The position numbers and the translations under genes were made by a program. Below are positions 5,209 through 64,000 of a stretch of DNA of 64,000 bases, one piece after another. Source of the stretch: Tubulanus polymorphus. Its lineage: Eukaryota; Animalia; Nemertea. Location: the NCBI RefSeq assembly GCF_964204645.1, contig NC_134035.1, positions 8,340,451 to 8,404,450 of the forward strand. Reading direction: 5' to 3'. Below the pieces are notes generated by a model. It searched no databases and was not told where the DNA came from. It saw nothing but the letters and a program-made list of their open reading frames with translations. Each line of letters starts with the position of its first letter. Position 1 is the first letter of the stretch.

Positions 5209-6748
5209 CTACGCGACCAGTTTAGTAAAGTCAGCGTCTGCCGTTATATTCGAAATTATTCTGCTTATATTGACGATATTCTTGACCACATCGTGAACGG
5301 AGAAGCGAACTTTGTATTCGGGGTTGGCGTCGTAATAAACATGATTTCGAACGTCCTTTGAGATGACCACGGCAGGTTTAGTAGTCGCACCAGCAGGTGT
5401 AACTTGCGTTACGTTGACTTGGACGGGTGTAATGGTCGTGTGCGTTGTTGTTGTTACGGCGGGCGACCTTGTCGTTCTGATAATCTGCGGCGACTTGTGA
5501 CGATAAATCGATTCTTCAGTATATGGTATGAATCTTGTACGATTGGCGCGGTAAACGGCTTTGCATACCAACACGCTTCGGTTGCGCTCGTCGCCAGCCG
5601 CCTTTTCGAACGCGCTCAAAACCTTGGCGACCATACGCGAGCCTGCCTTATTGGCGACGTCGTCTTTGCCCGTCTTGCGATTAGCCGCCGGCAGGAATTC
5701 GATGCTTCTACGCAAAAACTCGTGTTCCGGCGCCGAGAACATCAGCGCGTTATCGGGGATCCCGTCGTTATCACGGACGGGTATCATCGCCGGGTGCGAA
5801 GATATCAAATTATTAAAAGCACCAACTGCCCCGACATTCAAATCTGCGAATAGTCCTCCGAATGTATACAACACGAAATACCGAATCGCTTCGGATCTGT
5901 GAATTCCCCAGTGATAGTTTTTGTACATCGGGTGATAGGCGGGAAATCTCCTTTTGATGAACGCGTCCGCGACGCTATCGGTCCACAGCCAATATTCCCA
6001 GTCGGGGTGAAGTTTCATCCAAGATGTCACATTTCTCAGGAACGCTTTCGGGACGCTTTCGTTTTTCCACGTCTGGTGTATTCGTTTCGGGATGCCGTTG
6101 CATTCGCATCTGGCCGTTATTTGAAACTTCTCGAGCAACGTGGCGACTTCGTCACCGTATACGACGTCCGTTTTGATGGCCCATCGATGACGGCTTTCTC
6201 CGCCACGACCGCCGCCGAGCTTCCACTTGTCGAATAACGAGTAGGTGTTCGCCGTGTCTTTTAAGCATAGGCCAGCGAGCAGCAAAGCGCCGACAAAAAA
6301 CGCGAACCCGAGCACTCGGTGAAACCTTGTATTCCTTGAACATAAATTCACTGGCACCCTAGGGCAACAATCAAGAGAATATGTTATAATACATTAATAC
6401 ATAGGAACCAAAGTATTTGATTAGAAATGATAGATACCGTAGGAGAGATAACAATTGAGGGTAGAATTCATGGATCGTAGCAAAGATCCGGACAAAATCC
6501 ATTACACCTCATTCATAAACCTGTTTATAACGAGCTCGGATTTAATGATTTATCGGTTATTATGCAACCCTGGAATTTCTTCCCAAATAGGACAATTTTA
6601 ATAATTTCATACAACTATCGCTTAGCGAACATATTTCCTGGTCCCTTGAAATTCGTTGTAACTCCGATAGGAAGAATTTATGATTTAGTCAAGAGATGTA
6701 CTGGTTCTGCGTATTAACATACCTAGTTGCTGATCGAAGAAAGTCCAT
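5209..6748 (-). CDS. Glycosyltransferase family 32 (Och1/SUR1/MIPC-synthase-like) type II membrane protein, ~391 aa, with DXD altered to DLN
   Basis: Exon 6748-6723 encodes MDFLRSAT (in-frame upstream TAG, donor AG|GTATGT, phase 2) and joins exon 6358-5209 (acceptor ccctag). The protein has an N-terminal TM (VLGFAFFVGALLLAGLCL), the motifs IPKRIHQTWK, HPDWEYWLWTD and RSEAIRYFVLYTFGGLFADLN, and a Thr/Pro-rich segment near the C-terminus. Confidence 0.85.
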
Positions 6749-43006: not shown

Positions 43007-44026
43007 ATGTTCTCCGAAAACGAATTCGTCGTCGAAGTAGTCATTATTGCCGTACTTCTAGCCGAAGGAACTGCTATCGTGATCGGCAACGGTTTGACGA
43101 TCCACTGCGTGCGGAGCGTGCGCAGTTTACAAAAAATGATGTACTTTCTAGTGGCCAACTTAGCGGCTAGCGATTTACTCGTCGGTATTTCGTTGATCGT
43201 TTACGGCGTCTATCGTATATTTCAAACGGCGTCGGCGCCGCGCGAGTGCGTTTTAGTGTCGAGAATTCTGTGCAAAGGGTGGTTCGTCACCAAAGTCGTG
43301 TCGGTATCGTCATCGGTTCAAACGTTGGTCATCATCGCCTTCGATCAATACTTTTCGATTCGTCTGCCGTTTCGTTACCAGAGAATCAGCGTAAAGAAAT
43401 ACTACCGCGCGTTCTGCGTCGCGGTGCCGTGGATAACAGCGTCTGCTACGATGGTGCCGCTGGTCGTCTTCAATCTACTGGTCGGTCAAAAAACCTTCGA
43501 CCCGCGGACGCAGTTTTGCGTCTTTTTCTCCGTATTGAAGGACGAATATCTGATCGTGTGCGCGTCGGCTATTTGCGGCATCTGCTCGCTGTTATTCGCA
43601 TTTCATTCATGCATTTACCAAATCGCTAAAAAACATATTTTTCGCCTAGAGCTACTCGGAGGCTATACGACGACGGCGACCTCCCGTAAATACCGGTACG
43701 TATCGTCAATCTCAAAATCGAAAAAGTCGATCATGACGATAATCATCGTTTTGGGGGCGTTCTCCCTTTGCTGGACGCCGAATCTGATCATATCTATTCT
43801 GAAATTGCGCTACGGGAAACTGTCTCAAATCTATAGCGATATGGCTATAATTCTTATACCGCTGAATTCGATATTCAACCCGTTAATCTACGCTTGGAGG
43901 TTCAAGGAGTTTCGAAACGCCTACAAGACGATGTACTCGCGCAAATGTCGTTGTCGCCGGGCGTCACCACTGGCGTCGCCACGGAGGTCGCCATGGATGT
44001 TGGACAAATCGAGACGGTATCGTTGA
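43007..44026 (+). CDS. Class A (rhodopsin-like) orphan GPCR, 339 aa, single coding exon
   Basis: Seven TM segments with GN (TM1), LAASD (TM2), DQY at the DRY position, CWTP (TM6) and NPLIY (TM7), plus helix 8 FKEFR and a Cys/Ser-rich tail. Confidence 0.93.
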   Translation: MFSENEFVVEVVIIAVLLAEGTAIVIGNGLTIHCVRSVRSLQKMMYFLVANLAASDLLVGISLIVYGVYRIFQTASAPRECVLVSRILCKGWFVTKVVSVSSSVQTLVIIAFDQYFSIRLPFRYQRISVKKYYRAFCVAVPWITASATMVPLVVFNLLVGQKTFDPRTQFCVFFSVLKDEYLIVCASAICGICSLLFAFHSCIYQIAKKHIFRLELLGGYTTTATSRKYRYVSSISKSKKSIMTIIIVLGAFSLCWTPNLIISILKLRYGKLSQIYSDMAIILIPLNSIFNPLIYAWRFKEFRNAYKTMYSRKCRCRRASPLASPRRSPWMLDKSRRYR

Positions 44027-49000: not shown

Positions 49001-49413
49001 TATCGTTTGATATATAAAATATAACCTCACGGGAAATTAGTAAAACTGCACACTAGTCATTTCTTACCTTTTTTGCGTTTAATAGGTGTGCATATTCCCT
49101 TGCCTAGAAGCAGGTCTTTTAGAGGACGTGACGAGCCGACTTCGGGCCTGCACCGTAAAGCCGTTCCGCATCTTGCCGTCCTGATACCGCAACTTTCACC
49201 GGCCAATCGCGCGCACGTCAGACAGCACGAACATATACCCGGTTCGCGGACCAACTCCTGGCAGTCGATCGGGAACGGACATTTTGCCGCGTCGCACGGT
49301 TTACATTGGAATTTCTGTCGGAGGTGCCAGCTGTGCTTCAAGTTGTAGCAAAAAGCTTTGTCGACGATGGCCAGTAATACAGGCAAAATCGTCGCGATTA
49401 TCGTAGCTTTCAT
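46053..49413 (-). CDS. Secreted single insulin-like growth factor binding (IB) domain protein, 166 aa
   Basis: Exon 49413-49068 encodes a signal peptide (MKATIIATILPVLLAIVDKAFC) and a 12-Cys IB domain with GICSCCLTC, CGIRTARC and RPLKDLLLGKGIC; its donor G|GTAAGA is phase 1. Exon 46207-46053 (acceptor tttttcag) continues in phase to TGA. Confidence 0.85.
48361..48408 (+). ncRNA. Minimal hammerhead-like motif in the intron of the IB-domain gene
   Basis: TTCT-CTGATGA-G-GAGGTTTTG/CAAAACCTT-GAAA-TTGTT-AGAA. Confidence 0.5.
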
Positions 49414-49920
49414 TTTCGATAGATTGCCCCTATAAAGTTCGAACGAATGACGTACGATTGCGTTGTTGAAGAGTGTGTCACGCCGAGTAGTAGTTGGTGA
49501 CAACCGCCAATGAGGATCGAGAAGCTAAATGCAGACTCGCTCCGACCGACGACGGTAAGATAAAGAAAGATGGGTGTGCAGTCGCGTTCTTAAATAACTA
49601 AAACAAAACCGTGTCGCGCCTCCACTTATCGACGGGTGTGTGTCGCCCGTGACGTGGAAAAGTTACGAGTTGCGGGATTGGTTTTCGTCTGCAAAATGTA
49701 TTCGAATTAGATAAAGTAACCGTAACGCGAAGTGCTGCGAAACATAGGATTCGTATTACATTGAATTTAAAGTTCGTTTTCCTGAAACTGGGATTGCCGA
49801 TGACTCCTGTTTTTATAACGCAAGTTTATCGCCGAACATATCAAGTTACATCAATCCATGTTACGAATGATTTCAGATTTATTTCGAATATAATATGTAC
49901 CGTTCATTGACCTCACCCCG

Positions 49921-50084: not shown

Positions 50085-53000
50085 CTTTCGTTCGTTTAGA
50101 ACTTTTAGCATTTCTGGTAGTTTGACGACGGCAATATGTCAATCCAAGTATTTTCAGAAAGTGTCATATATACGTAGATGTATATATGTATTTTTTCAAG
50201 GTGCCGACAAACTTTCATGTTAGTTGGATTTCGATCGTGCTCTGAGGAGGAGGTTTATAAAAAGAAATTCTCAATGATTACGACCACGTTTGGCATTGAA
50301 TTTGCGACAAATAAGCCTTTATCATACATGATATCATCTCGGTTATCATAAATATTGTAGGAGGGAGTAGCTACAGTGACGTGATGCAATTTGCTCAGTT
50401 TAGGGAATATCGCTTGAATACATCAGCGCTATATATAACACCAGATAAGTTGAAACAAGAAACGTAAGTTAAAAGTTGATTGACGCTTTGAAAAATAACA
50501 CATATATTACTTTATATTTTCGACAATTCATGGTATAATACTAATACAATACTAAGGATCAAAGTTTGGATTTGAGCATATCACTACTTTAGATGAATCG
50601 ACCGGCAACCAGTCCAGCCCCGATATATAGATGACCCACTTAATTATATGAAAATCCACCATGAATTGTATGCTGTATCGTTCGCAAGAAATTTGAGATA
50701 GCTGCCCTGACGGCCATATTCGATGGCCAATAACCTGCATTTTCAATAGGGTTGGACACCTCAACTTCTTTATCCTAACTAAGTGAAAGAAAATATCCAT
50801 CAAGAATTGCAGGCTGTATCTTAAAGGACGGCGGACGGTTGACACTGAGTGAAATAAGAAGTCTCCGCGGGGAGACTTGGTAAACATACACGGAGTATCT
50901 CGTATCACAGTACTACACATTAGTACGGAGATATTATGACCAGTATCTCTGGTCATTCTATCCAACGAAAGCTGCTAGCCAACTGTTGGGGTTTCGTTTC
51001 AAAATATTTGTGCCGATATCAGTTCTAAAATGTTACTAGCTTGAGAATTCTACGGCTGCGTTCCTGTTTGGAATATGGCTGATTTGAAGGTGTAATTTGT
51101 CAAAAATAAAAGCTCTTCTGGCCGAGTGTTGTTCTGAAAAATGATATAATGTTTCTGGTAATTCATTGGCGAACAAAGTTTTCTTCTCGTCGTGAGGTAT
51201 CGAGTGGAATGCCAGAGAAAACTTTTCCGATCTGTCGACTTCCAATGACACGACCTTGCGCAATAATCAGCGATGAACCGATTTATTCGATCTCCGTTTA
51301 AGGAATAGTTATCGAAAGACGATCGCCTATCGTGTTGGAGCCACCCGTCCCACGCACGTCGTCGACGCGTTAAATATGAAATTGTGTCGTCGCGACGTTT
51401 CGAATAGCTGTTAGACATAATAACACAGCACACACACGCACACGCGCACACACGCACACACACACCGAGAAAGATATTCATGATTCATTGTTTTAATTGG
51501 AAATACGAAAATGTATCGGATTAAGACATCCTCGTTAAAAACGACGAGAAAAGATAGATCTGATATTGCTATTTGCCCAAAGATTGGCATCAGTTTACAA
51601 TTGACTAGATACTAGTTACACGGTGGCGGGCCCAGAAATTTGAGCCGGGTCTGGTCCCGAGTTTATAATTTTTTTATATTTCAATGAAAAATATTTTAAC
51701 ACAGCAATTGCTGGCAGACGCTGAAACAGCAGTCGATAAAGTTTCGGATTTTGGTTTGGTTTCATCATGATTAAAGGGGCGAGGAGGGGTCGAGACACTT
51801 ATCTACAGGTTGAAATGAATCATTGACTGGCAAAAGATTTCCTTCTATTGGCATATTTCAGAAAATGAAACGAACGTATTTACAAGAATTTGCGTTTTCA
51901 TTAAATTATGATCTTTGAAGAAAACTTTCATTTAATGGTTTTTTTTTCAACCGGCGGTGATTACATTTTTGACTTTTTCAAGATTTGACTCAGAATTGAC
52001 TCATTGAAAACGAACTAATTTCAACTCAGAGTTAACGCAAACTCACGACTGTGGAACTGGATAGATGTATACTATTAGTTCAAAATGTATAAAATGTATA
52101 TTGGATTGCTTCGAAATCGTAGGAAAACGTTTGAATACTTCGAAGTGAAACAATTCGTTACTTTTCGAATTGAGAACGAGCATCAATTCAGGAAATGATC
52201 CGAATACCTATAGAATATACCTGTTCAGAACATTTACTGAAACGGAGCAAAGCGTTCCCTCTTTTATCGCAAAACAACGAATTGAATTTGATTTCGACCC
52301 AGATTTCGCAAGACTTTGTATTCGAACAAAATCGATTTCGTCGGTATCTGATTAGACCTTTGTTTTATGGCACAGATTTGTTACTTCCTGGTGACATTTG
52401 AGCAGGCACACACACGGAGCTAGTGAATGCTCGCCAATCCACCATCTAGATATCTTCCTTTAGTGGTAAGATTTTAGAAACATTTTAATTCATCAGTAAA
52501 TTGGTGGGGTAATGTATATACTTAGAGAGGTTTCTTTTCATTTATTGATGTGAATGCGTAGGCCGCGTTCACTAGGTTATATTGTATACATGTTCGCAGT
52601 TTGATTTATCGACATGTTCGATCTTGAAATCTGAATTATTGTCCGTCTTGTTGACTTCATTTGGTCTGTCTCTTACAAACTCACCACACCTGCCGGGAAC
52701 GAAATAGTGGGTTTCAAATCGACACTACTGACTGGCGAACGGTGAAACTTTGACAGCACCGTTTGCCTTTTCTCTAGAACTTAGGCGTATGTCATGCCAT
52801 GTACAACCAAAATACATCTGGATGTATGCATTTGTAAATATCAGAACCAAATGCGGGGTAATATGAGTGTCCCTCATGGAGATGCAATTAGCCAGCTATT
52901 TCTCACGAACCCTATACAATATCGTTAATATCTCATGTACGTCGTGTAAGTCTAGGTTCGATATTACGCGTGCGACGGGCTTAATGCGGACTTAAATTCA

Positions 53001-53661
53001 GCTTAATTCTAATCCTCAGCCAGCTATGACATTTTTACTGTAATGGCCTTGTGATAACGAGCAGCATAGACGAAGTGTGTAATGCAATATGTATGAAGCG
53101 ATTATTTGCGTCCTCCGCGGCGACTTTAATAGCAATACATACATCTGTAATTTAAGATGCACTTTCCAACGTTTCGTTTATATAAGCCCTTTCGATAGAA
53201 GGTCAAAAGTTTGGTTGATCTTTAAAAAAGATCTTCCATATTGAATGACTACCACTCGATACACCACTCCCACTCAGTGCTGCTAGCGGCGCCATTTTAA
53301 ATAAATCTTAGAAAATAGGGATTGTCCCTGTTATTTATTTGTGAATTGATTTGATTTGTTTTGATTTGATATTCCTTACAAACCCACTACATCTGCTGGG
53401 AGCGAAACAGGGGTTTGATTTTGAAATCGGAAATCGAAGTTAAGAAATAGTTACGTGATTGGTAGTCGAATTCGCAGAATATTTTTTGTTTAAATCAATA
53501 CATAATTGGAAATTACGGTTCCAGTTAATGTAAGCAATTTTCCAACCAGTCTGCACCGACAAGCGACTGGGTAGGGTTTATCTTAGGTTACCCATGTCTC
53601 CCAAGTCCCGAGGGGTAAAAAGAAATCAGAATTCAGTTCAAAAATCATTTCAGGATGCGAT

Positions 53662-56600
53662 ATGATATCTGGAGACGAACAAAACTATTTGAGGATATGT
53701 TGGCTGATAGGCGACGTCGTAACGGGCATCGTTCGTCAGTTTTTCGACCAGCAGTTCCACAATGTATCGTCGTTACTGAAGAACAAACAGTCGCAAATCA
53801 ACAAGCTAAAAACGAAGCGGGTCGTAACGAACACCATGTGGAAGGTGCTTTACACAGCGAATAGACAGGTAATAGAAACACCGGGGACCACCGTGGGCGT
53901 CACCAGACTGGGGGTCGGGGTGCGGACGACCCCCTTTTTATATCCAAGTTCCGCAGTTTTAGTTCCAAACTTTCTCATTCCGGAAATTTCATCAGCATTT
54001 GCCTTTAAAGGTCCAGAAAATCAAACTTAGAATTTCAAAAATTGAGACTATCTAAGAACATCCAAGCGATTTCAAGGAATCAGAAATGTTCGTTTGCTTT
54101 CGGCGCTTGGCGGATACGGTGCAAAGTTAGTAACGGTACGGCATATAGTTCCTTTGACCCCCCCCCCCTTGAAAGAGCCTAGTAACACCCTACCTACAGT
54201 TCCAAAGTTGACTAATGACAAGAGTTGAACGGCTGCAAGCGACATTTCGAAAATCTTTGTATTCCATGGTTCACAGATCGTGACCTAATGCCATAGAGAC
54301 CATGGTATAATGCATGGTCAACCCATCTAAATGCTCATTTCAAATTCAAAGCTGTCCATCTTTTAGGGATCCGGTACCTTATTCATCAACTTCGCACAAG
54401 TTTGCTCTGGTGACATGCGTTGCGAGACGATTTGCGAGGTATTGACTCGCAAAAAGTCGTCGCAAAAAGTGATTCGCCCCGGTGATATTATAATGGCGCG
54501 TGTTACTTTAATAGCATGGAGATAATTTGATCCGTCATAAAAATAACATCCTATGTTTATTTTCTTTTGTGATCGTTGAAACCGTGTCTTCCTACGCCGT
54601 TCATCACAAAATCCAAATGTCAAAAACTTTTCCAGGTTAGTGATGCATTTTTCAGAGGCAACTTTAAAGGCAACGATTCACGGGGGCATATTCCCGCGTT
54701 GTACACGTCGCCCATTTTCTCAACACAAGTGAGCCATAGAAATTAATAATCTATAAGTATCTCTTAGATATAATGCGCGATATGTGCCATGGGTTATTCT
54801 TGAAACAGATTGCTAGCTGTTATCGCGTTAAAACCTTGAACGTGTAGACTACGTGTGATCGAAAAAATGCGTCAATAATTGTCTTATCTTGTTTTTGGTA
54901 TTTCGTTATTTATCAGTCATCTGATGTGACCCCGCGACTTCAGTAGGAAACCTATTCATAAACAAGAAAATTAACTTGAAATTGTATCGACGCCTTGAAA
55001 AATAACACTTATATCGCTTGATATCGTCGACAATGAATAATAAATCATTTCATCGATAGTATAACATTAATTATCAATAAAGTTATTTCAGATTTGAATT
55101 TCGATAATTGAATCGAATCGAGCGGCAACCAGTCTAGCCCCGATATATTCAAGCTCAAGTTCAAATTTATTTCACGGAGAGCAGGGAGGGAGAGAGGGAG
55201 AGAGGGAGAGAGGGAGAGAACAGTAGCTTTCTGTGTGGGCCAAGCAAAGCCTTAAGGCCGCTGTCGCAAGCGCCCAGGAAAAAAGAAACAAAAGGAAAAT
55301 GAAGAAACGAAGGGAAAGGAGATGAGAGATGATAATATTGATGACACCATGATGTAGTGCACATCGCACTCATACAGAGGTGTTTGGAGGCGTTTCACCG
55401 TTCAGGGTTAGATCCGACTGAAAAGATCAAATTTACATATGTGTTCATTTAAAACAAAAAATAACCATAAAGTTAATATCAACTCGCATTAGAACCGGAG
55501 ACCGATTATGTTGGTGGAAACTTGGAAGTTAGAAAAAAGGCCAAGTTTTCGTCCTATCTGAAATAAAACCATTCAAACAAGAACAGTTACTGCGAAGAAA
55601 AATATGTACGATCCTATGTTCTGTTTTCCTTCACCAAAACTAACCCACACAAAAAATATTTTCCATCCACTTCTATTCGACTTAGTTACTTACTTTTTTA
55701 TTCATTCTCAACTGTTTAGAATTCCTGTGATTTCTACGTTCAAGTATCCCCTGATGTTTTTATAGCATTGGTCGGTTTTTCTTTAGTTCTGATAGACATA
55801 GTTTCTGTTTTATTCCTGCGAGTTAACATACTTTGTTACTTGTGTTTTTGGTCATTCCACCCGATGATGGCTTTTGGTCAACAGCCGAAACATTGTGGTT
55901 TCATTATAATGAATGCTATCATATAATATTGGAATTGTGGGACTATTTCAATCATACACAGACTCTACGGATATTGTAGATATCGATATTCCAAACGATC
56001 AACCAATTTTGAAATTTTAGCTGATTGTGCAATTTGAAGAATGGATTTTCTCCACACGATTTCTGAATTCGTTACATTCTAATAATGTTACATTCGTTAC
56101 ATTCTAACGATTTTAAGCTATCACGACGTGACGTTTTCAGATTCCTGTCACGTCGACAGATATGGACATATCCCTGATGATGGTGCTCATTCGTAACTTC
56201 GGTAAAGTGGCGCCGAATGACCTGGTCAATCTGAATCAGTTGGTAACATGGAGGAACGAAATTATACACGATTACGGAAAGACAAGCCAGCTAAAAACCG
56301 CTAAATATAACGCGTTTGTAGGTAAGGGAAAAACTTTCATTGCGGTATTTATGATAGGGAGCATTCAAATAAAACCCTTAAATCTGTAAATAGCGGGTTA
56401 TATCTTGTAAACTATGGAAGACCTCAGACGACATACAAGATATGAGATATAACATCCGAGATATGAGATGCAACATACGAGATACGACATATGACATACG
56501 AGATACGACTTGTTTTACAGTACGGGTGTCCATCCGCTAGCGCCACCGCAGTGTATATTTTTCAACATCTACTCGGCGTATACTACGACACGTGCGCAGG

Positions 56601-59600
56601 CAGTGGCGTATACATTAACTATGAATATCGATATGCGAAAAACGTTTCATTTGAAAAATATTTAAAAATATTCGATCAACCGCTACCGGGGACCGGCCTC
56701 TCGCTACGGTAAGTGGGCCACTCTTAGTGTGAGACACCGATGGTCCGGTGATTCGAGTTGGCTCCAAATACGGGGCTACAGCCCATAAATCCACCAAAAA
56801 CGCCTCAAATTCCAAAATCCATTTTTGAGTGTACAAAAATCCCTCAAAAAGAGTTAGCCATGGCCCCTTCAAATTGGTGGTGCTAAGAATCGCGCTAGTC
56901 AAGGGTTTAAACTTCGCGTTCGATCGAGGGTTTTCGATGAAAAATGATAGATGTATGTATATTACGAATGCCGATGACCAAAGAGTTTAAAAAAAAGTCC
57001 GACACACGCGGAATCTGTTTAGTGTACTATGATTTCAACGAATGAATTGAAACATGGACATGAATTAAAAATACTAAAGATAACAAATTTATTGAATGAA
57101 TTATTCATTAAATATCAGAATGGAGTTCCATTGTATCACTCTCAGCTCCTGGCCCTAGTCCAGCTGATTTCGTTTATCACGACGTTTTTTTGCGACGGGT
57201 GCAAACGCACCATACAAGCAACGTTCCGGTGTTCCGCTAATTCCCTGTCTAAAAAAATGTTACTTGATATTTCCATGGATCTCTCATCTGTACAAATGTA
57301 AGAGCTGTTGTGTTTTGCTGAAGATTTATTATTTATGTGGTTCCTGTAGTTTTGTCAATAAACAGTTTTAAAACTGGCCATGATGATAAGAATGATCTTA
57401 AATTGGATTCTCCGATTATGAAAGTTATTCAGATTCAGCCATTGGCCCTTTTCATGAAAGATGTCAGAAAAGAAAGATAGCCAAAAAGCCCTCAGAATAC
57501 ACAAGTACCTAAATTGAACAAATTTTCAGGGAAGGACCCCAGACTATGGCTTCAAAAAGACAGTGCCGCATACTGCCCTGACGGTTAGCGAAAACTGGCC
57601 AGTCTCGACTCTCAACGGCTGGTCTAGTGGACTCACCAGTCAGCCCCGGTAGCTCGATAGGGATGGAATTTAGCTGGGGATTTCAAACCTTGAGAGAGAG
57701 CACGGGAGTTCTTAATCTGGATACCAGGGCGATGTACGGGTTCCCGGGTTGTTTGGGATTCAAGAACTCAGGCAGGGGTGTCAAACAGCCGAGGCGTACA
57801 CTAGAGGGCCGGGATTTCCGGCTGCGGAGTTTTTTTTTAGAATTTTGATTTCTAATGCAGAAAAGCCGGCGATCTAGCGGGCGGTGAACAGTTATTTTTT
57901 CTGCAGGCAGTGAGTAATCGGAACTCCGGCTCCTGAACACCAGGCCGTTTTCAGACCAAAGGAAGACAAGAAATAGCATAATATTATGAACTTGAACAGT
58001 TTGATATCTTTTGAAAATCTTTTGATTTGAAAAACTTTGTCGCCCGCGGGAGAGGAACGGCCGGCGCGCCTAGTCCAGGGTGTTCACAGTATGGCCTAAA
58101 ATCGTTGTGTCCGGTCCAGGTGTCCATTATCCAAAAGAAATATATTTCTGGTTTGAATAAAATGTTGACTATGTTGGTTTTCATATAATTGACGATGACT
58201 GTACGAGTCACCGTATTAAACGATTTATATGCAATAAATATTGAAAAAACATACACTGCGGTGGCGCTAGCGGACGGATACCTGTACTGTAAATAAGTCG
58301 TATCTCGTATGTCATATGTCGTATCTCGTATGTTGCATCACATATCTCGTATGTTATATCTCATATCTCGTATGTCGTCTGAGGTCTTCCATAGTAAACA
58401 ACCAGATAAGATATTTACTGCTGAAAATTGACTACGATTATCTCAGAAAAGCTGCTGTTACCCTATAATCTTGGTATCAATAAATCCATTCATATCTCAT
58501 AATCTTTTACAATTTGCGCTTACGTTTGCCTTCTCGAACTAACGTGCAGAACTAACGAAATCATGGACAATATCATAACCAGGCAACTTTCACGCTGCGC
58601 ATCGAATTATTTCTTAATTGAAACTTGAACTAGGAACTGAATATTCATCTATTTATGCATATATAGCTAATTTCACGCAGTCAATTATTCAACTGGGTGG
58701 AGTTGAGTGGCAAGGTGCAATTGACAAGGTCGTCACCGGATACATGGACCTAAATCTCGCCGAGGACTACAGCAACGAAATCGAACGCGAGTACAAGGAA
58801 GAAAAAGAACTCAAGGCCGAGGTGGCCGAACTGCATCAAAAACTCGACAAAGTAAACCTCGAAATACAGAAACTCGGCCAACAACAAGTCGTGCACGATA
58901 TAAACCGAAACGGTAAGGTTAAAAAACAATGAAAACTTGTTTCTCATTCCTGCTGAGCTTAAAAGTTGACCCAATCGGACGCAAGCACCCTGTACAGTAC
59001 TTTATCAAAAATCACGATCAAGCTTACCATAACATACCCGGCATCTATAGAAATGAACTGAAATTCAAATTTTATTAAAATTAACTGAATGGCCCGGCCG
59101 ATTAGGAGAAACGAGGTATTTTTTATTATAGCCTATTTAATTGGTTTATTTGATATTTCGTTTCAAATGTGAATAAACTGTCGATAAAGATTAACGTTGC
59201 GGTGCAGGGAAACACAGAAACACGGAAATCTCGAAAACATTGTTTTCCGAAATTATATTTCCTCGTTTGTCGTATAAAACGCACACGACACTCGGAAACA
59301 TGTTTCTGTCTCTTATTTCCGTGTTTCCCGGCGTCCGTCGTGAGCGCTGGTCTGAACGGCGCGTCACGTTTGCTTGCTTTCACTTGCAGCCGAATGTTCG
59401 AACCGCGTGATACCGCCCGAACAGGGAGGTAGCGCGGCGAGGTCACGCACTTCGCTAATTGACGACCCAGACGGCTTTACCGACATCAGCGGCGAGTGGT
59501 TGTTCATCACTGACAGTTTGCGAGCCAAAGACGTTATATTAATAACTGACATGCCAAAAGGTGAGGATCGCGCAAACACGCCCGTAAATGACGTTTTTAA

Positions 59601-60812
59601 AAATAGAATACATCAACGTATCAGGTATCTTCTTAATCTTGCATTTCCATTTACAGAAGTTGAATACAAACAAATTTGCAATCTGCCAGTTCGCAAAAAG
59701 GATCGGGCGACTTTTTCACCGAGTGACGTCATCAAATTAAACGACGGTCGCCTTGCCGTCTGCGACGATGTCAACGACGCCATCTATATTTTCGCTTTGA
59801 AACGCCAACGCGTTCGGTTTTACCTGGAATCAAAGTTTACAGGTTACAAACTAGATTTTCTATCATCTGTGGTGTTAAAGTAAGGTCACTATGTATACAT
59901 AAACGGGATATATAAATTTTCTGAGAAATTTTTTTATGGAATAGAGCCAGTTCTCTGCATATTTCATACACGTGTTTTGAATAACGAGAAAAATCAAACG
60001 ATAAATTCAGCCAGAAATAAAAGTTCTATAGTTCAAACTTTCAAACTGTCAAACTTTCAAAATATTTCAAACTGGTTCCCGAATTCTAATTATGATTACG
60101 GTGTTATTTACTCATTCTAGGCGGAGATGGAGATTTCGCTTTGAAGTCACCGATTCGCATGGCGCAATGGCGGAACTACCTGCTCGTGTTGATGCGCGCT
60201 AGAAACGAGGTCTACCTCTACCAAACCGATGACGGTTATCCGGTTACTTCCTTGACTTTACGGAAAACTCACCGAGGATTTCTGACGGCCGTCGCCGTCC
60301 GGGACGACGACGTCTACATCGGCAATTCGCGATGCGTCGAACACTACCGTTTTACGGAAGATGCCGAAAGAATCCGTATAATCCCGAAGCATCGCCGTTA
60401 CATGTTGAAGAATTTCGAATTCTGGGTATCGCATTTGAACGTTACGGGCGATGGCGACGTGATCGCCTCGACCGGATGGCAAAACGAACTTTATTTCTGG
60501 AAAAAAGGCAAATCGGAACCGGTGGCCGTCGAAGCGTTTCAAAATCCACGTGGCATTTCTCTAGATCCGGACGGCAATGTATTGGTGGCCGAGTTCGATA
60601 CACGCGCCATCTGGCGGATACCGGTGTCGCCGGGCCGGTTGCACGTCGACAAAAAAGAAACGGTTTTGGACGCGAGAAGTTTAAACGACGGACCGTCGTG
60701 TATCGTTGAGACAGACGACACGAACGTTTTCGTAGCGAACACTAGCGCGCGTCGAGTAACACACTTTTATAAAGGAGACCCTCCGAGGTACGTTTTGAGC
60801 GGAAATTTCTAA
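53662..60812 (+). CDS. DZIP3/hRUL138-type HEPN domain + coiled coil + six-bladed NHL-like beta-propeller protein, ~560 aa
   Basis: Phase-consistent exons 53662-53868, 56141-56321, 58667-58912, 59390-59560, 59657-59842 and 60121-60812 (1683 nt). The N-terminus EQNYLRICWLIGDVVTGIVRQFFD...WKVLY...DMDISLMMVLIRN...WRNEIIH...IIQLGG matches the DZIP3-HEPN pattern. Heptad coil: ELKAEVAELHQKLDKVNLEIQKL. NHL-like blades include FQNPRGISLDPDGNVLVAE and SPSDVIKLNDGRLAVCD. An acceptor at 53653 implies a further upstream exon. Confidence 0.85.
55857..55898 (+). ncRNA. Degenerate hammerhead-like motif (same family as the 62078-62117 motif)
   Basis: CCAC-CCGATGA-T-GGCT...AGCC-GAAAC-ATT-GTGG. Confidence 0.45.
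56413..58393. mobile_element. Non-autonomous DNA transposon with ~155-bp TIRs, TAT...ATA termini and 6-bp TSD GTAAAC (IS3EU-like)
   Basis: Left: GTAAAC(56407-56412)|TATGGAAGACCTCAGACGAC. Right: GTCGTCTGAGGTCTTCCATA|GTAAAC(58394-58399). The TIRs contain ATACGAGAT subrepeats. No transposase ORF inside. Confidence 0.85.
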
Positions 60813-61269
60813 AGTACATCAACATCTATATGAAATCGACTGAGATCGTGGCATTTTCCATCGGGACCTCGAGTAACCAGAGTGACCAGCAAGGGACTTT
60901 TTATAACTGTGTGCAAATCGGTGCAAGAGTCAATTTAGGTTCCAGCCAATAGATTTTCTTTTTTGAACACACCGTACACAATAAACCTCGCCTTTCCCGG
61001 ACCAACTGGGCAGCATGATTGGTCTGAGTTAAGCCTGAGTTAAGGATTGGAATATACGTCAAGTAGTCAGATGATGACTTCATTCTACGAAGTCGAAAGT
61101 CCGAATTGGCGAGGTTTACTGTATACATATGTACATGTATATATGTTAGATCTAAAGTAAACACAACGAGACGAATAGTACTGTTACCTATTTTATTTGA
61201 CACACGAACTTTCGCTATACTATTGCATAAAATTTAAGTAGCTTCATCATTGGGTCAGATGAAGCTACT

Positions 61270-61560
61270 ATAATGAAAATAAGTGTTTTTTATAAAGCGC
61301 TAAATCCAGCACATGAAAAGCCGCACAGAGCGCTTCACATAAAAGCCTCATTAAAGAAGACATGTTTAAGTTGCCTCCTGAAGATCTCCAAAGATGTTAT
61401 AGACCGGAGGTCTCCAGGAAGCTGATTCCACAGGGTCGGGCCATCGATGGAAGAGGCTCGAGAACCGAAAAACTCTCTATTGTATCTAGGGACTGTCAGT
61501 GAGATAAAGGCAGAAGAACGAAGAGGACGGCCAGGAACATGAATAAGCTCGTGCATCAAA
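61270..61560 (-). mobile_element. L2-clade LINE 3' fragment
   Basis: Encodes LRSSAFISLTVPRYNREFFGSRASSIDGPTLWNQLPGDLRSITSLEIFRRQLKH, followed by a 3' stem-loop tail. Confidence 0.85.
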
Positions 61561-62019
61561 TGATGTAGTTAACCTTTAAAGTACAACTCGTCTCGTTGTA
61601 TTTGTTCTACACCCGGTTAACACCAGGCTACTCTACGAATCTTCTCATCCGTGTATCCAACGGAACAACGCTTACTCCCGGGCTAAATTTGGCTAGTTCG
61701 TTGCACCAATATGATGGTTAACCGTATCCGACTTAGAGCGACGTTTTGGACTGAAGTCGTGGTCATTGAAACTGGATCCCGATTTCCCTAACTTCCTGAC
61801 ATTTATCAATAAAACAATTCCAATTGTCTTTTCAGTGAGATGTCCTGCACGATAATTTGAAAAAATGAAGACACGCGTGCAACCCCAATTCTGAACGAGC
61901 TTTCTTCTTGTGTTCGTACATCCGACTTACGCATCAAATTTGTCCGCGCGAAGGGACACTTCGCAAGAATGTCAGGATATGTCGTCGAATGAAACACTAT
62001 AATCCGTGTATATTGAAGA

Positions 62020-62197
62020 TTAATTGAAGAAGTCCCACAATTCAAATTTCATATGAGATAATTTATCAAAATGAAACCTCAACGTTTCGGCTGTTGACAA
62101 ACAGCCATCGTCAGGTGTTAGTCAACAGCCAAACGTTGTGGTTTCATTTTGATAAATTATCTTATATTAAATTTGAATTGTGGGACTTCTTCAATTT
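62020..62197. mobile_element. Penelope-like pLTR palindrome with hammerhead motif
   Basis: Inverted arms. The minus strand at 62117-62078 reads CAC-CTGACGA-T-GGCTGTT/AACAGCC-GAAAC-GTT-GAG. Confidence 0.7.
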
Positions 62198-62816
62198 GTC
62201 AGGATATAATAAACGAGATGTTTTATACTGCACTGTTAAACTGTTCCGTATATCTATAATGCTGCATATGATTTATCGCACCCCCATCACATTTATTCGA
62301 TCAATTCCAACGTTCGTAGTTCCCGATGAGATATCAACTCAAAAATGTTTTTTCTAGCAATTCTAAAACAGGAAATAATATATCTAATTCCCCCCAAAAA
62401 AATCGCTGATGATTTTGATATTTCATTTCCCGGCATGGATGAAAAATGGCACAGTTCCAACTCCAGTTGGCGCGTGCATGTTCGTGCAGTGACGTGATTT
62501 GGTTGAGTGGGGACAGGGTACATTTGTCTTAAGGTGAAAAATGTTGAATGCGCCCTCAGATATTTATACTCTCTTAGATATTTTCGATATACACAGTAAA
62601 CTTCGCCTAATTCAGAAATGGCCACCTCATGTTTTTGGTAAACTTGAACGAAAATCTATATCATAATTTACTGATCTAAACTAAACTACATCGTAACTTC
62701 GATTAGAAACGACCGACTATGCTGGTCCCAGTTTGGGCGCGAAGTTTACTGTAGATATGTCCAGATAGACTAATGGACAAATGAAAAATCCGCGGTGCCT
62801 TCTCCAAAAATAATCA

Positions 62817-62973
62817 CAGTACAATCCGCTTAATTCGGATCATTCGGGACCAACAAAATTCATCCAGTTTGCGGGAAATCCGGATTAAAACCCAATTTCG
62901 TGTAGATTGCGAATATAATCCGGATTAGATCAAGATTCAGATTAAGCCGATCCGGATTAAGCGGGTTTGACTG
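62817..62973. mobile_element. Tc1/pogo-type MITE
   Basis: TIRs CAGTACAATCCGCTTAATTCGGATC / GATCCGGATTAAGCGGGTTTGACTG, with TA on the right side. Confidence 0.6.
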
Positions 62974-64000
62974 TATTACATCAGCGGTGTTTGCGCGGCG
63001 CCATTTCGAAGTCACACGCGCAAGGTCCACGCGCTGCTTGCTCGAATCGATGACAGTGAAGTCAGCTGTTACTGATTCCAACGGGTGTCGTCATTGATTC
63101 GAGGCGCCTGACAGACGGCTGCAAATGAGCATCTTTGTCTCCGGTCGCACAAGGCGAATGATTTTTTCATGCAAAGATAATAGTCGACGGGGTTAATAGA
63201 CGTCGGTTTTACTAGCTTATAATCACGTTTCGCCAGTTAGCGGGTCTCGTGTCTGTTGTTCGGCAACGGATGAACAGTTTTACGGCGACTGATGAGCGCA
63301 TTGTGTCTTTATGGAACGGTGATCGATCAAACCGAATGAAACATCGGCGCGGTCGGCGCATTTCAAGAAGCCGATTGAAAAAGAATAGATATTTCTCGAA
63401 GATCAAAATTCGTACATTTCTATTCCTATAACTACGTTTTCAAATTATACTTAATAGATATTTGCGAGGAACAACAACAACGACATTCTCAAGCTAACGA
63501 AATAGCGTTTAGGTGTGGAAAAGCGAGCTCAGATCGCCCGTACACGAAACAACCTTCAGAAGCAACTGGTGGACTTGACTTGTAGTGTTACTTGATCCAT
63601 GAGGTCGTTGATGATCGGACTTCTATGAGCTCCAGCGCTCTTTGAATGTAGCGTGACAGACTTTTTTCAGATTAACGCTTATATCGGGAAAACAAATACA
63701 TCATTATTCCAAGATTATTCCTCTTGCAATTCTTCCTACGTTATTGCTGTCAGTAACATGATCATCAAGCGCTTCATTTCGCCAGCGATAGTTACTATTC
63801 TATACCATCCTCACGAGTGGCCATGTATAGAACCAGCTAGGAATCAGTAACATTTCCTGACACATAACACGAACTCAAAATTATACTTAGTGGCAAACGA
63901 TATTGAGTGTTTTTCTCGTATCGCGTTTCGTCTTAACAATTAACATTTTCGTCTTTAAGCAATAACAATGATAATACAAGTCGTGTCATTATATGGGGCA

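Follow-up and report, generated by a model that had tools for sequence, protein, structure and literature searches.

The question raised by LOC141912641, a gene annotated as uncharacterised in the palaeonemertean ribbon worm Tubulanus polymorphus, is what kind of protein it encodes and whether that protein may act as a ribonuclease (RNase) coupled to a sensor. The gene lies on the plus strand of a 64,000-nucleotide stretch of eukaryotic DNA (C11:8340451-8404450 in the assembly, G+C about 39%; below, the window), where it occupies positions 53662-60812 (6 exons). That it is an intact protein-coding gene, whose product joins an N-terminal HEPN domain, a coiled coil, a linker and a C-terminal NHL propeller, is practically certain. 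To the best explanation as a whole, which adds to this architecture a mechanism with the propeller as the putative sensor and paired HEPN domains as the putative nuclease, we assign a probability of roughly 0.5.

Gene structure and identity

The plus strand between 53580 and 60160 was read directly by eye for exon boundaries. A first-pass annotation of the window, made from the sequence alone, had proposed six phase-matched exons for one protein of about 560 amino acids (aa), and such a protein was recovered: all junctions were GT-AG, each donor phase fitted the next acceptor, the joined frame ran without a stop and the coding total of 1680 nucleotides (nt) gave 560 aa (Table 1). An exhaustive search of representative proteins with exon 6 alone retrieved a 560-aa protein (P0001), 100% identical over residues 332-553, which is the RefSeq entry XP_074660057.1, "uncharacterized protein LOC141912641"; this entry served as the full-length reference in the later analyses. 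The exon peptides matched it residue for residue as far as ...FYKGDPP, and the last 8 residues alone differed. In the RefSeq model a donor at 60787/60788 (CCGAG/GTACGT) leads to a seventh exon, a mini-exon that encodes the tail SEMSCTII, while reading through the donor gives the alternative tail RYVLSGNF and a stop at 60810-60812. AATAAA signals were present at 60980, 61808 and 62208, near the two possible coding 3' ends. The assembly comprises 268 Mb in 77 contigs, and exon 2 was unique in it; the gene is single-copy.

Table 1. Coordinates of the LOC141912641 exons, motifs, genomic relatives and neighbouring coding frames (window positions unless a locus is named; exon boundaries within sequences are marked by a slash)
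Feature	Position	Strand	Details
Exon 1	53662-53868	+	residues 1-69; ATG 53662, donor CAG/GTAATA, phase 0 at 3' end; first HEPN helices; identical to P0001 residues 1-69
Exon 2	56141-56321	+	residues 70-129 and first base of codon 130; acceptor ttttcag, donor TAG/GTAAGG, phase 1 at 3' end; HEPN core with predicted catalytic helix
Rx4H motif RNEIIH	56252-56269	+	R107-H112; predicted HEPN RNase active-site motif
Exon 3	58667-58912	+	residues 130-211; acceptor atatatag, donor ACG/GTAAGG, phase 1; final HEPN helices, then coiled-coil helix; Pfam HEPN_DZIP3 envelope stops at residue 164
Heptad segment	58750-58875	+	residues 158-199, best register; 9/12 a/d positions hydrophobic
Exon 4	59390-59560	+	residues 212-268; acceptor cttgcag, donor AAG/GTGAGG, phase 1; acidic, treated as linker
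Exon 5	59657-59842	+	residues 269-330; acceptor tttacag, donor CAG/GTTACA, phase 1; first NHL propeller blade(s); aligns with both paralogous propellers; modelled strands from residue ~272
Exon 6	60121-60812	+	residue 331 to end; acceptor attctag; read-through stop 60810-60812, RefSeq exon end 60787; rest of propeller blades; Pfam NHL 22.6 bits and SGL; 100% identity to P0001 332-553
RefSeq exon 7	61836-61860	+	last 8 codons SEMSCTII and stop; acceptor cttttcag; matches P0001 C-terminus
Death-NHL paralog	L008:1932-3802 (G000:C1:6631932-6633802)	-	Death-like exon and single-exon NHL-like propeller
Death-NHL paralog	L010:1652-3936 (G000:C11:6267652-6269936)	-	Death-like exon and single-exon NHL-like propeller
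DZIP3-type HEPN	L004:1153-2064 (G000:C5)	-	single exon, 101.6 bits; motif FRKQLVW, histidine lost
DZIP3-type HEPN	L005:1312-2004 (G000:C3)	+	single exon, 42.2 bits; motif IRNYLGR, histidine lost
Neighbour: DXD glycosyltransferase domain	5209-6357	-	coding frame
Neighbour: intronless rhodopsin-family G protein-coupled receptor	43007-44026	+	coding frame
Neighbour: IGFBP-like exon	49057-49503	-	coding frame

The HEPN domain

The N-terminus had been called a DZIP3-type HEPN domain, and the family profile bore this out: Pfam HEPN_DZIP3 (PF18738, curated gathering score 27 bits) matched the whole protein with 48.6 bits (E 9.4e-13; residues 34-164, profile positions 3-144) and residues 1-170 alone with 53.5 bits. 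The single-exon matches to this profile were sub-threshold but collinear (exon 1, positions 3-38; exon 2, positions 38-61), and exon 2 also matched the catalytic helix of HEPN_RiboL-PSP. With this profile match, an Rx4-6H motif and an all-helical predicted fold, the protein belongs to the DZIP3/hRUL138-like HEPN family. The motif RNEIIH was found intact exactly where it had been claimed, at the C-terminal end of the modelled helix 94-114, and R107 aligned with the motif arginine of two paralogous HEPNs in the same genome (L004 and L005), in neither of which the histidine is present. It is of the Rx4H kind in which N follows R, reportedly the commonest one among oyster DZIP3-HEPN proteins (PMC9646362). 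The suspected shortening of the loop after LIRN was likewise real: 131 residues span 142 profile positions, and the canonical paralog L004 has 10-13 residues more in this stretch. The domain is basic, with a computed isoelectric point (pI) of 9.4.

The AlphaFold2 model of residues 1-225, obtained with a three-sequence alignment, was all helical, with a predicted local distance difference test score (pLDDT) of 79.5 and a predicted template modelling score (pTM) of 0.66. Foldseek of the model of HEPN and coil against the PDB gave noise only (globins, E above 0.5). In an exhaustive VIA search of solved structures the HEPN model was matched best by Csm6 (4rgp_B; Z 8.5, root-mean-square deviation (rmsd) 3.4, 115 residues aligned), then by AbiF and a Cas nuclease (both Z 7.3), with RnlA and a second Csm6 lower. 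Csm6 and AbiF are HEPN RNases; these Z values are under the VIA caution level for helical bundles and therefore count as consistent only. Against the ESM Atlas, the HEPN model matched HEPN_DZIP3 clusters at template modelling scores (TM-scores) of 0.66-0.71 and the Atlas's own model matched such clusters, vertebrate DZIP3 included, at 0.65-0.75; the N-terminus does model as a HEPN, and these matches between predicted structures are stronger support for the fold than those from the PDB.

The NHL propeller

The six NHL-like blades of the first-pass annotation were borne out by modelling, while the NHL sequence profile gave a divided answer: Pfam NHL (PF01436, gathering score 20 bits) reached 22.6 bits with exon 6 alone and 20.3 bits with residues 265-560, but 16.9 bits with the whole protein. 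Only one blade (residues 470-491) was recognised by this profile, and a Pfam SGL match stayed just below its own cut-off. The best solved relatives by sequence were the NHL domains of TRIM3 (E 8e-4), TRIM2 and TRIM71, the identity to TRIM-NHL propellers being 13-18%. Residues 216-560, modelled from an alignment with two paralogous propellers, gave a pLDDT of 76, a pTM of 0.76 and 24 strands arranged in six four-stranded blades (residues ~272-548), all of them from exons 5-6. A VIA search with it gave the Lin41 filamin-NHL structure first (Z 27.9, rmsd 2.7, 257 residues aligned), followed by Thin, TRIM71, Mei-P26, TRIM3, TRIM2 and Brat at Z 26.5-27.8, and these TRIM-NHL matches outranked PknD, paraoxonase and strictosidine synthase. 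The NHL domain of TRIM71 aligned to the model over its full length (579-855). The top Foldseek TM-scores belonged to TRIM2, Brat and Thin, with values normalised by target of 0.76-0.77 to TRIM2 and Brat. The propeller is basic as well (computed pI 8.6). On this modelling, the C-terminus (residues ~269-550) is a predicted six-bladed NHL propeller whose shape comes nearest to that of the RNA-binding TRIM-NHL propellers.

Coiled coil and linker

The heptad coiled coil that had been noticed between the two domains proved to be real but short, and resembles a leucine zipper. AlphaFold2 placed one long helix of 58 residues at 158-215, within which the best register covered residues 158-199, with clean a/d positions at L178, V182, L185, L189, V192, I196 and L199; about 4-6 heptads can be counted in the helix, about 4 of them clean, and the clean heptads are preceded by an E/K-rich stretch. 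If the coil forms a parallel zipper, it would bring two HEPN domains together.

The exon 4 segment (residues 212-268) is acidic (pI 4.5), has no Pfam match and carries one NHL-like motif. Residues 216-268 had a pLDDT below 50 in the propeller model; the alignment held no paralog sequence over exon 4, so this low value is not strong evidence of disorder. From the model, the segment is treated as a linker and not as one of the six blades.

Propeller paralogs and other HEPN loci in the genome

The proposed count of paralogs gave different results for the two halves of the protein: exon 2 was unique, while a genome search with exon 6 found two paralogs only, at C1:6.63 Mb (E 5.7e-15) and C11:6.27 Mb (E 5.2e-8), 24-30% identical across the propeller. 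In both, a Death-like exon lies 0.7-1 kb upstream in the same orientation (Pfam Death, 20 bits with a cut-off of 22.6 bits; E 7e-4 and 6e-4). Neither has a HEPN nearby, and no other upstream domain was seen within about 6 kb. Judged from sequence, the genome thus appears to contain one propeller lineage that is joined to either a HEPN or a Death-like domain. The presence of a Death-like domain in the place of the HEPN fits effector swapping on a shared propeller. Beyond these genes, about fifteen other loci with NHL repeats were present, including long single-exon TRIM-NHL-like frames.

A Pfam profile search of the genome found three other DZIP3-HEPN loci, a number that is a lower bound because intron-split genes such as LOC141912641 escape that search. 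The loci L004 and L005 have lost the motif histidine and are candidate inactive HEPNs, which leaves LOC141912641 as the sole catalytically competent-looking DZIP3-HEPN among the loci found.

Two side observations concern other domains in the genome. On the minus strand at L009:8422-8727 (G000:C1:6648422-6648727), about 15 kb upstream of the C1 paralog, inspection by eye revealed a catalytic exon of calpain type (GDCWLLAA...EFW..LLEKAYAK), which probably belongs to another gene. First exons of caspases (Peptidase_C14 positions 1-57) form the ends of several open frames of 390-800 aa: one of 396 aa on the minus strand at L023:1450-2637 (G000:C8:929380-930567), and others at C8:2.27, 2.31, 3.08 and 3.72 Mb and C11:13.88 Mb. 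The L023 frame had no detectable sequence similarity to the LOC141912641 propeller (E 4.5).

Relatives in databases and literature

Word-index searches with the whole protein, with residues 1-215 and with a profile of the protein and its two paralogous propellers returned the protein itself only; since this type of search also missed the genome's own paralogs, the result shows that there is no close relative and says little about distant ones. In the exhaustive exon 6 search, none of the top 150 matches had a HEPN domain besides the protein itself; the others were long multi-repeat NHL proteins aligned over one or two blades, which for this reason were dropped as a source of propeller alignments or orthologues. 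Joint alignments of HEPN and propeller were dropped as well, because MAFFT put HEPN sequences onto the propeller, and the two halves were folded separately.

The ESM Atlas pointed to molluscs. The nearest cluster by features ("hypothetical protein"; score 0.93, 204/256 features in common) had 142 molluscan members of about 543 aa, with HEPN_DZIP3 in 78% and a structure matching propeller residues 266-549. The second, "DZIP3-like HEPN domain-containing protein" (score 0.87), had 113 molluscan members of 617 aa, with HEPN_DZIP3 in 48% and NHL in 12% of them. The best full-length structural neighbour was a molluscan cluster with B-box and NHL (TM-score 0.51). The molluscan clusters are known from cluster summaries and not from sequences, and are leads rather than alignments. 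With two clusters that appear to carry HEPN_DZIP3 and a propeller, the architecture is probably not unique to T. polymorphus, and the HEPN-coil-NHL layout is likely to exist already in more than 250 mollusc proteins. A caveat of the first-pass annotation, that such an architecture might already exist, was therefore well placed, as at least these two clusters appear to share the domain layout. The relationship is distant, no 5-residue words in common with them having been found in the word-index searches.

In the literature searched, no description of the HEPN-coil-NHL layout and no paper pairing HEPN with "NHL repeat" was found. A pearl-oyster paper described WD40 and TPR on NACHT proteins, and its supplement made no mention of NHL (PMC9646362). 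Altogether, the protein is one of the domain-shuffled invertebrate DZIP3-HEPNs; it was already recorded, unnamed, in RefSeq and probably has many molluscan counterparts.

Comparison with known systems

LOC141912641 shares with the DZIP3/hRUL138-like HEPN family the above-threshold profile match, an Rx4H motif in which N follows R, and the predicted fold, and with many invertebrate DZIP3-HEPNs the position of the HEPN at the N-terminus of a multidomain protein with a repeat module after it. It differs from the described members of the family in the NHL propeller, in the shorter post-LIRN loop and in that the family is not expanded here. The molluscan clusters resemble it in length and layout and differ in phylum.

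With the TRIM-NHL proteins (LIN-41/TRIM71, Brat, Mei-P26, Thin, TRIM2/3) it has in common a six-bladed NHL propeller at the C-terminus, placed after a coiled coil and a linker. Neither RING nor B-box was found when the whole protein was scanned against Pfam (E up to 1), so that the protein is not a TRIM; its N-terminal module is a predicted nuclease and not an E3 ligase. The description of a TRIM-NHL-like scaffold in which a HEPN replaces RING and B-box is fair, given the undetected RING and B-box and NHL matches at Z 26.5-27.9. The coils differ in length: that of LOC141912641 has about 40-58 residues, while the antiparallel coils of TRIM proteins have ~100 residues or more.

In RNase L and Ire1 the HEPN RNase works as a dimer and is coupled to a sensor module (PMC3710099). 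The likeness is one of concept only (a sensor plus a HEPN RNase), the HEPN being of another family. The Pfam scan of the whole protein found no kinase or pseudokinase, no KEN-type HEPN and no ankyrin 2',5'-oligoadenylate (2-5A) sensor, and with KEN, kinase and ankyrin repeats absent LOC141912641 is not a relative of RNase L or Ire1.

The HEPN-NACHT-repeat NLR-like proteins have, similarly to LOC141912641, an N-terminal DZIP3-HEPN as the presumed effector before a repeat module. In bivalves the N-termini of NLR-like proteins carry either Death or DZIP3-HEPN (PMC9646362), and such a Death/HEPN interchange occurs in the HEPN-NACHT-repeat proteins of both bivalves and cnidarians (PMC9646362, PMC9334734); the Death-NHL paralogs of T. 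polymorphus mirror the bivalve case. In contrast to these proteins, LOC141912641 has no NACHT or other nucleoside triphosphatase (NTPase) switch, and a coiled coil stands in the place of the oligomerisation module.

Other features of the locus

The neighbouring coding frames of the window (Table 1) belong to other kinds of genes, and no tandem paralogs were present in its 64 kb. An out-of-frame ATG located 7 nt 5' of the start at 53662 opens an overlapping frame of 69 codons (53655-53864). An acceptor-like tttcag at ~53646-53652, just 5' of both ATGs, suggests that the 5' untranslated region may be spliced. Intron 2 is mostly occupied by an inverted-repeat-flanked element (56405-58401), whose arms at 56405-56562 and 58245-58401 (~160 nt, 92-95% complementary) lie ~1.7 kb apart and which holds short tandem units of 14/21 nt; it looks like a non-autonomous DNA-transposon insertion. 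A scan of 52000-64000 against Rfam gave no match.

Proposed mechanism and alternatives

Every characterised HEPN RNase needs a composite active site formed from two Rx4H motifs, and as a functional class the HEPN RNases pair two Rx4-6H motifs by dimerisation and cut RNA without a metal. In LOC141912641 the propeller would serve to recognise RNA or some other ligand, and two HEPN domains would be paired by the coil, by ligand-driven clustering or by the two together, so that two Rx4H motifs could form the composite site and the paired HEPNs could cleave nearby RNA, either in defence or in RNA control. Across the gene lineage, the propeller may be a shared sensor on which effector modules (an RNase or death-fold signalling) have been exchanged. 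RNase activity, dimerisation and an immune role are what we infer for the protein, and the sensor-coupled RNase mechanism taken by itself is a tentative proposal, with chances of somewhat over one in three. It agrees with the basic charge of HEPN and propeller, with the retention of the motif and with the interchange of Death and HEPN, and none of these is a test of it. The wider formulation is unlikely, namely that HEPN-coil-NHL proteins make up an undescribed lophotrochozoan (nemertean and mollusc) class of sensor-coupled RNases, functionally analogous to RNase L and with a TRIM-NHL-like chassis, in which the propeller would sense viral or cellular RNA or a ligand, HEPN pairing would trigger cleavage, and the nemertean propeller lineage would feed either an RNase or death-fold signalling.

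Several points weigh against the sensor-coupled RNase. Instead of a coil, the E/K-rich stretch at the N-terminal end of the helix could form a single alpha-helix (SAH) spacer, and SAH structures of myosin VI were among the solved-structure matches of this helix. A TRIM-like antiparallel coil would hold the HEPN domains at opposite ends, in which case activity would depend on higher-order clustering. With Z 8.5, the match of the modelled HEPN to solved structures is weak for a helical bundle, a class for which the caution level is higher, the Death matches of the paralogs (20 bits) fall a little short of the Pfam cut-off, and the molluscan HEPN and propeller clusters rest on summaries and are leads. 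The other two scored DZIP3-HEPN loci have lost the histidine, so the family tolerates inactive forms, and no report of RNase activity for any DZIP3-type HEPN was found in the literature searched. Finally, the gene is single-copy and not expanded in the T. polymorphus genome, and its neighbourhood is ordinary, with no immune gene cluster.

The last of these points feed the most serious alternative, in which the HEPN is an RNA-binding or adaptor module and the protein works as a post-transcriptional regulator or scaffold of the TRIM-NHL type, without cleavage. It agrees with the lack of any report of RNase activity for the family in the literature searched, with a single-copy gene in ordinary surroundings, with the two histidine-less HEPNs that have nevertheless kept open reading frames, and with a propeller closest to those of RNA-binding regulators that work without a nuclease. 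However, the full R-N-x3-H is kept here and lost in the paralogous HEPNs, which suggests selection on the catalytic residues, and 194 of 202 oyster DZIP3-HEPN proteins reportedly keep Rx4-6H (PMC9646362); we consider this alternative rather doubtful, at little better than one chance in four. The propeller might also bind a protein rather than sense RNA or another ligand. NHL propellers are known to bind proteins too, both paralogs carry a Death-like domain instead of a HEPN, and the same genome has a caspase first exon within a 396-aa open frame, all of which would suit a protein-interaction platform in death-fold or apoptosis-type signalling, with the HEPN as one of several interchangeable outputs for the same partner. 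The caspase-exon frame lacks detectable similarity to the propeller, however, and among solved structures the nearest are NHL domains that bind RNA, although likeness of fold does not show a common ligand; such a platform is improbable, more so than the wide RNase class outlined above.

Very improbable is a chimeric model, in which two genes, one with the HEPN (exons 1-3) and one with the NHL propeller (exons 4-6), were wrongly joined by both the first-pass and the automated annotation. In its favour, intron 1 (2.27 kb) and intron 2 (2.35 kb) are long, the second with its transposon-like insertion, and XP_ records are computational predictions. Yet at each of the five junctions the phases agree, the splice signals are good and the frame stays open. 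Codons are split at the end of exon 3 and at the starts of exons 4 and 5, and no start codon in good context lies within exon 4 itself. The RefSeq terminal exon of 8 codons would rarely be picked ab initio without transcript support, and the molluscan clusters of ~543 and 617 aa with HEPN_DZIP3 and a propeller suggest that the fusion is present in another phylum. An intact HEPN-coil-linker-NHL gene, whose product may act as a sensor-coupled RNase, thus stays our preferred reading.

Significance

Few presumed immune effector modules of molluscs, cnidarians and amphioxus are as expanded as the DZIP3-type HEPNs, a large animal family for which no experimental study was found in the literature searched. 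LOC141912641 may be an easier test case than the NACHT-linked members: it is a single-copy gene for 560 aa without an NTPase switch, its catalytic motif is intact, and the RNA-binding relatives of its recognition domain (Brat, LIN-41) have been studied in depth. Should the HEPN prove inactive, the gene would add another shuffled protein to a family that is already known. If a motif-dependent RNase and a propeller ligand are found, this would be the first mechanism for the animal DZIP3-HEPN family, and would bear on whether the bacterial-style logic of a "sensor plus HEPN RNase" extends in animals beyond RNase L and Ire1.

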